64,000 bases of DNA, taken from the NCBI GenBank assembly GCA_025594325.1, contig JANHCV010000012.1:1364001-1428000 (forward strand). Direction: 5' to 3'. The position numbers and the translations under genes were made by a program. This DNA is from Blastocladiella emersonii ATCC 22665. Lineage: Eukaryota; Fungi; Blastocladiomycota. This document shows, piece after piece, positions 4,875 to 26,306 of this stretch. The stretch's first letter is position 1. The number at the start of each line of letters is the position of its first letter. The notes beneath the pieces were generated by a model, which worked only from the letters and a program-made list of their open reading frames with translations, made no database searches and was not told the origin of the DNA.

Positions 4875-5343
4875 CTAGTAGCGGCCGATGGCCTCGTCGT
4901 CGCTGCCGTCGGGCCGGACCTGCGACCAGTTGATGGGGAGCGGCACCCACAGGGAGAAGAGACCTGGTGGGCGAGAGAACGAGTGAGTGAGTCGCCAGTC
5001 GAGCTGGCGACGAGGATCAACCGGAGGCGGTACCGATGAAGCGCGTGTTCTCCTCGGGCACGTCAATGACGGAGAAGAGCTTGAAGTCCTTGCGGTCATA
5101 CAGCATGCTGGCGATCTGCGCGGCCGCCTTGCGCTCGAGCCACGAGCGGCCGTCGCTACGCGGGCGATGGGGACGACGGTGAGCGGGGGGTGCTCGTACG
5201 CGCGAGCGGCGTAGCGGTCAGCGGTACCTCTTCATCTTGGTCTCAATGTACTTCTTGAACGACCTCTCGTCGGGGTTGGTCGCAAACGCCGTGGCGGCGA
5301 GCGCGACGACGACCGAGACGAGGGTGACAAAGTTCTTGCTCAT
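4875..5343 (-). CDS. Small (~108 aa) protein with an N-terminal hydrophobic segment, DUF4359-like; exons 5228-5343, 5034-5155, 4875-4963
   Basis: Splicing gives MSKNFVTLVSVVVALAATAFATNPDERSFKKYIETKMKSDGRSWLERKAAAQIASMLYDRKDFKLFSVIDVPEENTRFIGLFSLWVPLPINW... The TNP, F.LFS and FIG.F pattern resembles DUF4359. Introns are 5156-5227 and 4964-5033. Confidence 0.6.
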
Positions 5344-22041: not shown

Positions 22042-23932
22042 ATGCCCGTTCCCGTCGCGCCGACCTCCGTCGCCGGCATCGGCGGCAGCGACGCCCCGCC
22101 CACTGCGCCGGTGCTCAGCGAAAAGTGGGCGGCGTGGGACCAGACCATCACGCAGCGCGCGCTGGTGCCGCTGGCGGCCGCCGCGACCGACCTGGCCGAC
22201 TTTGCCGCGCGCCAGCAGACGCTCGTGCTCGAGGCGCGGTCCATGGACGAGCTGCTCAAGCTGCACGCGCAGGCCGAGGCGTGCGCGGCCCAGGCCCTCG
22301 CCAAGGTCTCCGACTACCTGTCGCGCGCGAGCGCCGGGCTTGACGAGACCGTCGGCCACTGCGGGACCGAGCTGACGGTGCACACGGCCAAGCTCGACGC
22401 CATTTCCGAGGTGCGACCAACTACTCAACTTTGAAGTTCCCGTACTCACACCTAGTCATGATTATAGCGCTTCGAGGAGCTATTTGGCGCCTCGATCCGC
22501 CGCGACACGCTGCCGCTGCGCCCTGAGCAGCCCGAGCTGTCGCTCGAGGCCGAGAAGCCCTTCATCACCTTTCACGGCACTCGTGCGCACGCCGGCGTCT
22601 CTACGGGCCGCTCCGGGTCGTACCTGTCCATGACGTCGACCGGTTTCCCGCCGCCCTCGCCGCTGTCTCCGCTGAAGCCCGGGTCGGCGACCATGTCGGG
22701 CAACCCGTTCGGCACCGCCTCGAGCGCTACGAGCACCGGCACCGCGTCCATGAGCAACGTGCCGCCCAAGCTCGACCTGTCGGTCCTCGACGCCGTCGGC
22801 ACGCCGCTCCCGCCGCTCGCGTCGCTGCAGGTGTCGTCGGACAAGAAGCTCGGCGACGGCGCCGCGCTGCTCGGCGGCGTCCAGGCCAAGTTCGAGCTCA
22901 CGTCGCTCGGCGGCACCATTGCCCGGCGCGGCGGCGGCGGTGACCGCGCGTCGCTGCACGACAATGAGGGCATGGCGCCGCTCGACCGCGCCCAGTCCAC
23001 GTCCATTGACAACCTGCCGCCGCCCCCGCCGCCGCCGCTTCCGCCCGGGTCCGACGTCGAGACAGCGAGCGTGCGGTCGGCCTTCAGCGCTGCGTCGGCT
23101 AGCACCCTGTCGTCGCCCCCACCGCCCCCGCCAGGCGCAGTAAGCCAGCAACCGTCCGTCGCCTCGCTTCCCCCGCCGCCTCCGCCGCCCGCTCCAGCGG
23201 CGCCCGTCGCTCAAGCGGCCCTCCCGCCTCCACCTCCCCCTCCGGCTGCTGCACCTGCACCCGCCGCGTTCAACGCGGTCCCTCCGCCGCCGCCTCCGCC
23301 CCAGCACCAACAGCAGCAGCAGCAGCAGCAGCAGCCGGCGCTCCCCTCACCACCCCCGCCTCCGCCCGCGACCCACGCCGGGTACGCGAACCTGGTCGCT
23401 CCCGCCATGGGCTACCCACAGGCGCGCGTCACGACGCCTGAGCCGGGCACGGGGAGCGTGCGGTCCATGTACCCGCAGCCCCCGCCGCCGCCGCCGCCCG
23501 CCCCGGCCGCGTCCATGGGGTACCCGACCCAGCAGCAGCAGCAGTACCCGGGCGGCAACGGCGGCACGTTCACGGGCATGGGCTCGGTGCGCGGGGCATA
23601 CCCAGTCCCGCCGCCGCCCGCGCCGGTCCCGCAGCAGCAGCAGCAGCCGCAGTACTCGATGGCGGCGGTGCACGGCGGGTCGGTCCGTGGGATGTCGCCG
23701 GTCCCGCCTCCGCCGCAGCAGCAGTACGGCGGGTATCTGCAGCAGCAGCAGCAGCAGCAGGCGGGCTACATCCCGTACGGCGGCGCGCAGCAGGTGCAGC
23801 CGCCGGGCGGTGGGTACGGCGGGTCGGTCCGTGGCGTCAGCCCGCAGCAGCAGTACGGCGGGACCATGAACCAGGCGCAGCAGCAGCAGTTCATGTACCA
23901 ACAGCAACAGCAGCAACAGCAGCAGTACATGT

Positions 23933-24005
<73 letters not shown>

Positions 24006-24384
24006 CCAGGCGGGCGGGTACGGGTACCAAGGCCAGGCGCCGCCGCCGCAGCAACAACAGCAGTACTACCAGCAGCAGACGCAGCAGCAGTACTCGCCCG
24101 GGTACGGCGGCGGCCACCCTCAGCAGCAGCCGCAGCAGTACGCGGCTCCAGCGCCGACAGGGCACGGTGCGGGCGGGGCGGTGCCGACGATCCCGCCGCC
24201 GCGCAACCCGATGGCGCGCGTCATGTTCCCGTACGCGGCGGTCGAGGCGGACGAGATCGACTTGGTGGCGGGCGAGGTGATCGAGATCCTGACGCTGGAC
24301 GCGGGCGCCGGGTGGACGCGCGGCATCACGCCCGACCGCCGCCGGTGCGGCATGTTCCCGCGGACGTATATCCAGCTGCTGTGA
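22042..24384 (+). CDS. Abi (Abl-interactor)-like SH3 adaptor with polyproline and polyglutamine tracts; intron 22411-22467
   Basis: C-terminal SH3 (ARVMFPYAAVEADEIDLVAGEVIEIL...GWTRG...GMFPRTYI) and many polyPro runs. The helical N-terminus (AQALAKVSDYL...) and KLDLSVLDAVG recall the Abi N-terminal and HHR motifs. Confidence 0.7.
23935..24003 (+). repeat. Pure (CAG)23 tract encoding polyglutamine
   Basis: 23 uninterrupted CAG codons counted; the neighbouring Gln runs are interrupted by CAA. Confidence 0.95.
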
Positions 24385-24783: not shown

Positions 24784-26306
24784 ATGCCACCGACAACCGC
24801 CACCACCACCTGCCACGCCTCGCTCGCCGCCGCCGCCATGACGACACTCTCGGGACTCACGCACACGTACTCGTCGGCGTTCGCGTCGGCCAACAAGTTT
24901 GAGCTGGCGCCCGCGTGTCTGCTCGACCTGCGCGCCGTGTTCGCGTCGCGCGCGTGGCCGCCGACCACCGCGGGCGATGCCGACGAGTCGGGCGCGATCG
25001 CATGGTGGGACGCCATCGACTTTCGCCCGCGCCCGAGCCCGCACCTAGCCGTCAACCTCGACCGCGTGCGCCCGCTGCTCGTCCAGGCGTGCGGCGGATG
25101 GCCCGACCTCGTCCCCGCCACCAACGCCGAGCTCGCGCGCCTCCTCGCGGACCAGCTGGTACGCTCTGCCGCCATCTACATGCTGTGAACCGCAACTCAC
25201 GCTTCACCCTCCACCGCTAGCTGTCCGACCCCGTGGTCGCCTCGGTCATGCCCGTGCGCGACGCCGAGCTGCGCGTGACGCTGCGCGACTACACCCCGCT
25301 GCTCGACGCCATGGTCGCGTCGTCGGCGCTGGCCCGCGCCCCGCCGGCCTCGCCGACCCCGTTCTTCTCCTCCCCCAAATCGTCGCGCCCGACGTCGCCC
25401 GCCGGCTCCTCGGCGCCCACCCCGCTCGTCTACCTGTACCCCACGACCTCCCCGACGAGCACGCGCGGGACCCTTCTCGCCGCCTTCCTCGCGCGCCTGT
25501 CGGGCGCTCCGGGCACCATGCACCCGCCCTCGGCCTCGGCCTCCCCAACTCCCGCGCCCGCACTCGAGGGCAAGCTGCACCACCTGCTCCGCGCGCTGCC
25601 CGTCATGACGGCGCCCGGCGGCACTAAGCTCGTCGACTGCGGCGCCGACGCGGGTGTCGCGGTCTTGTTCTCACGCGGGAACTGGACCCCGCTCGCGGCG
25701 CTCGTCGCCGACCTCGCCGCGCGCCGTAGCGGGACGACCGCGTTCCTCGTGTGCCCCGTCGGGTGCGAGGCCGCAGCGGGGCAGGTCGTCGCGCTACTCC
25801 GGATGCTCGACGCGCCGTGTACCGTGCGCGTCGTCGCGTACGTCGAGTCGCTGGCGGCGGGGACCAGTGAAGGTGCTGGTGAAGCGCTCGCGGTCCTCGC
25901 GGCCAACCGCCGCAAGCCGCTCGCCGGTAGCGGGTCCGGGTCCGGGTCCGGGTCGCGCGCCAACGAGTGGGCGTGCATCCGCGCCGCGTGCACCGCCGCG
26001 TCGACCTCCGCCACGGCACGCCCGTCTCCGCGCGGGAGCACCGACTCCGCCGCCACGGCCGAGGCGTGGGCCGAGCTCGCCTTCACGCTCGCGCAGTACC
26101 CGAGCGTGCTGCACCGGTGCGCGCGCGGCGCCGAGTCGTCGCCGCTCGCGACCTACGCCGTGCGCGCCGCCAAGCTCGCCCTCCGTGCCACCCGCCGCGG
26201 GACCACGTCGGCGAACACGAACACGGCGGCGGTGGCGCGCGCCGCGGCCGAGGTCCTCGAGCACGCCGCGTGGGTCCTCGCTGGCGACGGCGCTGACGAT
26301 GTGTGA
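24784..26306 (+). CDS. Degenerate arginyl-tRNA synthetase-like protein with a C-terminal DALR anticodon-binding domain (HIGH/KMSKS lost); intron 25159-25220
   Basis: The C-terminus WAELAFTLAQYPSVLHRCARGAESSPLATY...VARAAAEVLEHAAWVLAG fits a DALR domain. Internal segments are collinear with ArgRS (TRGTLLAAFLARL; GGTKLVDCG...VLFSRGNWT; FLVCPVG...QVVALLRML) but lack the catalytic signatures. Confidence 0.7.

Follow-up and report, generated by a model that had tools for sequence, protein, structure and literature searches.

A rapidly diverging gene of Blastocladiomycota encodes a candidate non-catalytic descendant of arginyl-tRNA synthetase

Aminoacyl-tRNA synthetases have repeatedly given rise to dead paralogues, in which modules for tRNA recognition are reused. 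To our knowledge, DALRD3 is the only characterised dead paralogue derived from arginyl-tRNA synthetase (ArgRS). Human DALRD3 combines a C-terminal DALR domain with an N-terminal region found only in DALRD3 homologs; the protein binds METTL2 as well as tRNA-Arg-CCU/UCU and is required for 3-methylcytidine at position 32 (m3C32) (Lentini et al. 2020, PMC7237682). At that time DALRD3 had no known homologues outside vertebrates, and two origins were proposed for it, either a duplicated ArgRS that lost catalysis or a domain fusion (PMC7237682). Here, we analysed a stretch of 64,000 nucleotides (nt) from the fungus Blastocladiella emersonii ATCC 22665 (contig JANHCV010000012.1, positions 1,364,001 to 1,428,000; hereafter, the window), in which a gene at 24784-26306 encodes a protein whose C-terminus is very probably an ArgRS-type DALR domain. 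With moderate confidence, we interpret the protein as a non-catalytic descendant of ArgRS (a pseudo-synthetase) that is fast-evolving, restricted to Blastocladiomycota, and able to bind tRNA. All positions refer to the window, and all features described below lie on the + strand.

The gene is a real spliced gene in B. emersonii. Exon 1 (24784-25158) ends with ...GACCAGCTG followed by GT, and exon 2 (25221-26306) closes with a TGA stop codon at 26304-26306. The intron between them (25159-25220) is 62 nt long, has GT..AG borders and a GC content of 0.60, and contains an in-frame TGA. Because its length is not a multiple of 3, retention would break the frame, and its removal is therefore needed to keep the frame. 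Translation of the spliced product from the first in-frame ATG (24784) gives 486 amino acids (aa) with no internal stop. The B. emersonii genome is described in PMC9730499; the NCBI protein model for this locus, KAI9159570.1 (P0001; H9P43_008910, hypothetical protein, Blastocladiella emersonii ATCC 22665), shares the 25158/25221 junction, is 100% identical to the translation of exon 2, and starts at the next ATG (24838), which gives 468 aa. The GC content by codon position is 0.70/0.56/0.92 in exon 1, and the GC content at third positions (GC3) in the gene frame is 0.92-0.93 (0.93 in exon 2), compared to 0.90 in the upstream neighbour gene. This is a 72% GC region with long open reading frames (ORFs) in several frames, although the GC3 coding signature is confined to this one.

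An earlier note on the window, which had described the DNA from its sequence, proposed a two-exon, Ala/Pro-rich gene with splicing and frame intact. Its coordinates were correct, with the same intron in KAI9159570.1, and all of the peptides that it quoted are present in that protein. The product is 21% Ala and 8.4% Pro, and an orthologue with an intact frame exists in a second genus, as described below. A start at ATG 24784 would add 18 residues (MPPTTATTTCHASLAAAA, 24784-24837) to the NCBI model; this segment overlaps an imperfect 13-nt repeat (24785-24816).

We searched 1.84 billion representative proteins with phmmer and recovered a sole relative, ORZ37229.1 (P0002) of Catenaria anguillulae PL171, a hypothetical protein of 172 aa that matches residues 292-463 of the B. 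emersonii protein (E = 5.6e-11). This public model is too short, as an upstream ORF in the same frame completes an orthologue of ~450-490 aa. The full-length Catenaria ORF is uninterrupted (L001:4939-6519, MCFL01000013.1; first ATG at 5035) and aligns by tblastn with residues 3-462 of the B. emersonii protein at 29% identity (E = 1e-33 with composition correction, 1.6e-44 without it). The B. emersonii intron is absent from the orthologue, in which the ORF is continuous across that point. From the N-terminus to the center, the conserved blocks are WW..RP.P.PHL, LVQ..G.WP, AE.R..L.D..PLL, RG...A.FLARL, P.G....D.GA..GVA.L, F.V, Q.VAL, and VAY; toward the C-terminus they are LA.NR, LA.TL.QYPSVL.RC...AES.PLATYA.R.A, and V.R.AA.V..HA.WVL.G. 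The low-complexity linkers between the blocks are unconserved in Catenaria.

Two metagenome scans found no relatives, and a PHROGs search returned nothing relevant. Word-indexed protein searches with exon 2 or with a two-species profile returned self matches only, with the filter swamped by low-complexity words. We found no synteny of flanking genes between the Catenaria locus and the window. Overall, the gene is conserved but rapidly diverging across two genera, and so far it has been seen only in Blastocladiomycota.

The evidence for ArgRS is concentrated in the C-terminal helical domain (25950-26285, residues ~351-462). DALR_1 (PF05746) is the only Pfam family matched by either orthologue, and the match covers profile positions 25-70 every time, with a core at residues 381-424 (26040-26171). 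For B. emersonii, the E-value was 0.008 with the last 135 aa and 0.032-0.064 with longer pieces; for Catenaria, it was 0.048-0.2, depending on the query piece. Among NCBIfam models, TIGR00456 (argS) was the sole match of both Catenaria queries (E = 0.16 and 0.047, below the curated cut-off) and the second match of the B. emersonii C-terminal piece (E = 0.086), behind an FEA1-related lipoprotein model (E = 0.0062). In both orthologues the TIGR00456 matches cover model positions 477-522.

For profile-profile tests, we assembled an ArgRS alignment from ArgRS genes on contigs of phage and IMG/VR collections together with E. coli argS. Using hhalign, the two-species profile matched this diverse ArgRS profile at E = 0.018-0.023, with a DALR alignment that spans E. 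coli ArgRS 486-571 and reaches the C-terminal LG motif. The alignment pairs QYPSVL.RC...AES.PLATYA with the f-P-x-v...P-H-x-i-x-Y-L-x-L-A signature of ArgRS and V.R.AA.V..HA.WVLG with a-R-L-x-L...v-L-x-x-g-L-x-l-L-G, and the residues conserved between both orthologues coincide with conserved DALR positions. As controls, we shuffled columns for hhalign and residues for a hidden Markov model (HMM) of the ArgRS set, keeping composition in both cases. The hhalign DALR score was matched by none of 60 and none of 200 column shuffles. The ArgRS HMM gave 11.3 bits for B. emersonii, with 0/300 shuffles as good, and 6.9 bits for Catenaria, with 1/300 as good. The DALR match is weak and sub-threshold but reproducible in both orthologues, and on balance the evidence leans toward a true DALR_1 domain.

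The N-terminal alpha/beta domain (25000-25322, residues ~55-141, spanning the intron) may correspond to the Add-1 domain of ArgRS (Arg_tRNA_synt_N). It is the best-modelled part of the B. emersonii structure model, with a predicted local distance difference test (pLDDT) score of ~60, and Foldseek placed residues 17-143 of this model on ArgRS 2-114 with a probability of 0.89. hhalign placed the block at 96-131, with the helix ARLLADQLLS, on E. coli ArgRS 55-64, which is the P-x-x-I-A helix of Add-1 (2/200 joint shuffles as good). The N-terminal part of the Catenaria protein matched ArgRS HMM positions 55-68, with 6/300 shuffles as good; the N-terminal part of the B. emersonii protein gave no match to this HMM, and neither orthologue matched Pfam Arg_tRNA_synt_N (PF03485). 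Downstream, the helix STRGTLLAAFLARLSGAP (25458-25511, residues 187-204) occupies the position of the helix that follows the HIGH motif in ArgRS. Its best local profile match is E. coli ArgRS 132-149, where R189 faces the invariant R134 (4/200 joint shuffles as good). Both the N-terminal block and the post-HIGH helix lie at the positions expected for a protein collinear with ArgRS, with a marginal joint shuffle P of ~0.01-0.02 each.

The catalytic signatures of a class I synthetase are missing. Regular-expression searches found neither H-x-G-H or its variants nor a KMSK or MS-x-R-x-G motif in either orthologue. At the position collinear with HIGH, B. emersonii has ...SPTSTRG... and Catenaria has ...AAQEPRG..., which bears out the statement of the earlier note that HIGH is gone. 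The Pfam family tRNA-synt_1d (PF00750) gave no match at E up to 10 with whole proteins or fragments; as a positive control, E. coli ArgRS matched this family at E = 5e-181. The stretch from the post-HIGH helix to the helical tail is only ~130 residues long, compared to a catalytic domain of ~350 residues in E. coli ArgRS (95-446). Given that the class I signature motifs are missing, an active synthetase is all but impossible, and the protein is predicted from its sequence to be unable to charge tRNA.

We modelled both orthologues with AlphaFold2 on two-sequence alignments. The models were poor, with mean pLDDT values of 38.4 and 38.0, and the fold searches based on them are therefore leads at best. 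The order of N-terminal elements is the same in both models (strand-strand-helix-helix-strand-strand-helix), and both continue with a helix at RG..A.FLARL, a hairpin, helix-strand-helix-strand, and five helices. The central hairpin and beta-alpha-beta unit (25593-25847, residues 232-316) is conserved between the two fungi; in the collinear reading proposed earlier, it would be what is left of the second half of the Rossmann fold. This order fits Add-1, the post-HIGH helix, the second Rossmann half, and DALR; the pattern is also a common one. When the B. emersonii model was compared to Swiss-Prot with Foldseek, ArgRS accounted for 14 of the best 30 matches, aligned collinearly (E = 0.2-0.8, template modelling score ~0.12; residues 224-460 on ArgRS ~265-570). 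In an ESM-Atlas shape search with the same model, 7/10 family sets were ArgRS-like over residues 22-309.

We also compared language-model features for the whole protein, for exon 2 alone, and for residues 1-340 alone. In these comparisons ArgRS, Arg_tRNA_synt_N, DALR_N, and DALRD3 clusters were among the nearest, at scores of 0.81-0.90, a range that is read as a lead only. The nearest neighbours include phage ArgRS-like clusters. With residues 1-340 as the query, the ArgRS-type clusters rank below two unnamed Bacillota clusters (0.84 and 0.83).

To place these signals along the protein, we made a local alignment of every conserved block with the ArgRS profile and compared the position of the best match with the one predicted from the ArgRS architecture. 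Four of the seven shuffle-controlled blocks fell at the expected position: ARLLADQLLS, STRGTLLAAFLARLSGAP, and two DALR blocks, for which the joint shuffle controls were 0/200 and 4/200. Fisher combination of the seven controlled blocks gave P ~1e-3 for similarity collinear with ArgRS, and it is the ends of the protein that account for this value. The earlier note had read the protein collinearly against ArgRS throughout. That reading drew marginal support for the N-terminal block and for the post-HIGH helix, where the note's pairing of RGTLLAAFLARL with HLRSTIIG... coincides with the best local profile match (E. coli ArgRS 132-149), and broader support for the DALR-like C-terminus of ArgRS type, on which Pfam, TIGR00456, and hhalign are concordant and which shuffles rarely match. 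In the center of the protein no alignment test supported it.

The central blocks are among several observations that weigh against an ArgRS origin of the protein. The three central controlled blocks (GGTKLVDCGA..., FLVCPVG...VRVVAY, and AAGTSEG) matched off-position, with scores like those of shuffles, so the central pairings proposed in the earlier note, whose best matches fall elsewhere, are rejected as unsupported. The segment AAGTSEG (25854-25874, residues 319-325), which the note had taken as the site of MSTRKG, the KMSKS equivalent, is also unconserved in Catenaria. An eighth block (residues 350-372), aligned with no shuffle control, was off-position as well. The middle region (141-340) scored 13.1 against the ArgRS profile, compared to 12.8±1.4 in shuffles, and neither the ArgRS HMM nor Pfam matched the central ~200 residues. 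For this central part, the support for ArgRS comes from language-model features and one low-confidence shape search, which the Catenaria model did not reproduce.

The same caution extends to the better-matched parts. DALR_1 scores were 12-17 bits, under the curated cut-off of 22.3 bits, the probability that hhalign itself assigns to the DALR match is just 2-2.5%, and no single test attains conventional significance. Searches of PDB sequences with the single protein, the full profile, or the C-terminal profile returned no ArgRS, only designed helical repeats. Ala/Leu-rich helices can draw helical profiles, and for some blocks 15-27% of the shuffles had their best match at the expected position. 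In addition to the poor quality of both structure models, the Catenaria model (pLDDT 38) gave ArgRS as 2 of the best 30 Foldseek matches and none in the Atlas shape search, so that the ArgRS enrichment is weak or absent with this orthologue, and the enrichment obtained with the B. emersonii model counts as a lead only. Foldseek against the PDB and VIA-align were uninformative.

Taking both sides together, we regard ArgRS ancestry of the whole protein as likely; for the N-terminal and central parts this ancestry is something we infer, as are tRNA binding and the role of the protein. The main rival is a domain fusion, in which an ArgRS-type DALR domain gave rise to the C-terminal ~120 residues alone, the N-terminal 340 being an unrelated, lineage-specific alpha/beta region. 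A fusion would fit the observation that it is the DALR part alone that recurs in both orthologues and across all profile tests. It would also fit the central part being without alignment signal, the lack of Pfam matches to tRNA-synt_1d, Arg_tRNA_synt_N, or DALR_N, and the failure to find an ArgRS-like shape with the Catenaria model; the same alternative was weighed for DALRD3 (Lentini et al. 2020, PMC7237682). We nevertheless consider a fusion unlikely, given that residues 1-340 lie near ArgRS-catalytic, Arg_tRNA_synt_N, and DALR_N clusters (though below the two unnamed Bacillota clusters), that the N-terminal block and the post-HIGH helix sit at collinear ArgRS positions, and that the Foldseek match of residues 17-143 to the ArgRS N-domain and the Atlas shape match of residues 22-309 both extend into this region. 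It is very unlikely that the protein has no relation to ArgRS and is a Blastocladiomycota orphan whose Ala/Leu-rich helices give chance, composition-driven matches. All ArgRS-type E-values are 0.008 or worse and below curated cut-offs, the PDB searches lacked ArgRS, and the models are of low confidence, all of which an orphan would explain. However, composition-keeping shuffles reached the DALR score in only 0/60, 0/200, 0/300, and 1/300 cases, and the matches of two orthologues at 29% identity coincide in model position in each of two libraries. Their shared residues fall on conserved DALR positions in an alignment that ends at the C-terminus as it does in ArgRS, and a single family dominates the language-model neighbours.

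Two further explanations were rejected. The many long ORFs in other frames of this GC-rich region could suggest a decaying pseudogene or an annotation artefact, yet this is the only frame with a GC3 of 0.92, a value like that of neighbouring genes, and the splice signals are canonical. An intact, collinear ORF of ~1.4 kb is present in two genera with block-wise conservation along its whole length, and an intact frame at such divergence rules out a pseudogene or chance ORF; we rate this explanation as extremely unlikely. An active, highly divergent ArgRS (an organellar enzyme, for example) might account for the ArgRS-like matches obtained by language-model features and by shape. Its chance is negligible, as neither species has HIGH or KMSKS/MSTR, the ~130-residue core is too short compared to a catalytic domain of ~350 residues, and tRNA-synt_1d is not matched.

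If the protein is a pseudo-synthetase descended from ArgRS, it would have retained the C-terminal DALR helical bundle and, probably, the N-terminal Add-1-type domain. The two would be joined by a shrunken core of ~130 residues from which the HIGH and KMSKS/MSTR signatures for ATP binding have been lost. In ArgRS, the DALR bundle holds the anticodon stem-loop and the Add-1 domain touches the D-loop. The most likely activity of the fungal protein would be tRNA binding, and tRNA-Arg is the obvious candidate. The role we favor is drawn by analogy from DALRD3-METTL2 and from seryl-tRNA synthetase (SerRS) with Trm140 or METTL6: the protein would present some of the tRNAs to an enzyme that modifies them.

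Compared to ArgRS, a class Ia enzyme composed of Arg_tRNA_synt_N, tRNA-synt_1d, and DALR_1 (TIGR00456), the fungal protein is alike in its sub-threshold C-terminal DALR alignment, which reaches the C-terminus, in a possible Add-1-like N-terminal domain, in the place of the post-HIGH helix, and in overall domain order. It differs in lacking HIGH and KMSKS/MSTR, in having a core of ~130 rather than ~350 residues, and in giving no significant sequence matches. SerRS with Trm140 (yeast) or METTL6 (human) offers a possible functional analogy, that of a tRNA-specific binder guiding an m3C32 methyltransferase; those systems use the active synthetase itself, whereas here a separate dead paralogue would serve.

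DALRD3 is of similar size (~470-540 aa) and carries a C-terminal DALR domain after a non-catalytic N-terminal region, an arrangement that the fungal protein probably shares. Chordate and arthropod DALRD3 clusters occur in the language-model neighbourhoods of the fungal protein at 0.83-0.89, as near as ArgRS clusters, and the Atlas clusters also contain arthropod DALRD3. A conserved Arg lies in the last DALR helix of the fungal protein (R447), and the human disease residue R517 of DALRD3 is also in the last helix (PMC11615593), a comparison made by helix location alone. The kinship with DALRD3 proposed in the earlier note was not borne out by direct searches. The Pfam family DALR_N (PF26758) gave no match at E up to 10, the one link to it being a language-model neighbour at 0.83. 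The phmmer search found no DALRD3, DALRD3 is absent from the best 30 Swiss-Prot Foldseek matches, and we found no description of a fungal DALRD3-like protein in the literature.

By analogy, the fungal protein would resemble the type of protein that DALRD3 is presumed to be, a dead ArgRS of which the tRNA-binding parts remain, and it could be either an orthologue or an independent derivative. We consider it distinctly unlikely that this gene is the Blastocladiomycota orthologue of animal DALRD3, which would place a dead-ArgRS adaptor, guiding an enzyme of the Trm140/METTL2 type to tRNA-Arg for m3C32, in the opisthokont ancestor, with loss in Dikarya. If true, such orthology would contradict the published view of a vertebrate or animal origin of DALRD3 and of m3C in tRNA-Arg (PMC7237682). 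If the fungal protein does combine a DALR tail of ArgRS type with a body that may also come from ArgRS, the invention would either date back to the root of the opisthokonts or have arisen twice. In both cases it would provide a second, very divergent sequence for finding which parts of a synthetase are needed in tRNA targeting. Blastocladiella is a tractable model fungus. The protein would be a new, very divergent pseudo-synthetase in a lineage with none described; because the homology is weak, we treat it for now as a lead and not as an established result.

By language-model features, the whole protein lies closest (0.90) to truncated ArgRS-like proteins of phages and bacteria in the Atlas (240-430 aa), which have Arg_tRNA_synt_N, DALR_1, or both, in some cases together with part of tRNA-synt_1d. 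The shape search is headed by an actinobacterial cluster of 356 aa with Arg_tRNA_synt_N and DALR_1. These proteins embody the same idea, a synthetase cut down to its tRNA-binding modules, but they are prokaryotic or viral, and they are likened to the fungal protein by language-model and shape scores alone, of which those <0.9 are leads. The Atlas clusters are bacterial (Actinomycetota and Cyanobacteriota, 240-392 aa) and phage (~390-430 aa), with Arg_tRNA_synt_N and/or DALR_1 and little or no catalytic domain. Such truncated ArgRS-like proteins seem to be widespread and uncharacterised. Full-length ArgRS genes of bacterial type occur on Enterococcus, Listeria, and Staphylococcus 'phage' contigs of 35-214 kb (OR846590.1, OR846731.1, and OR844990.1; UNVERIFIED_ORG), which are probably host-genome contigs rather than phage.

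We detected no tRNA genes within the window. The upstream neighbour gene (22630-24384) encodes a Pro/Gln-rich protein with very long poly-Q runs. Within the gene itself, a perfect (CGGGTC)4 microsatellite (25931-25954) codes for GSGSGSGS in the linker that precedes the DALR-like domain; this repeat is missing from the Catenaria orthologue, and its length could differ among isolates of B. emersonii.

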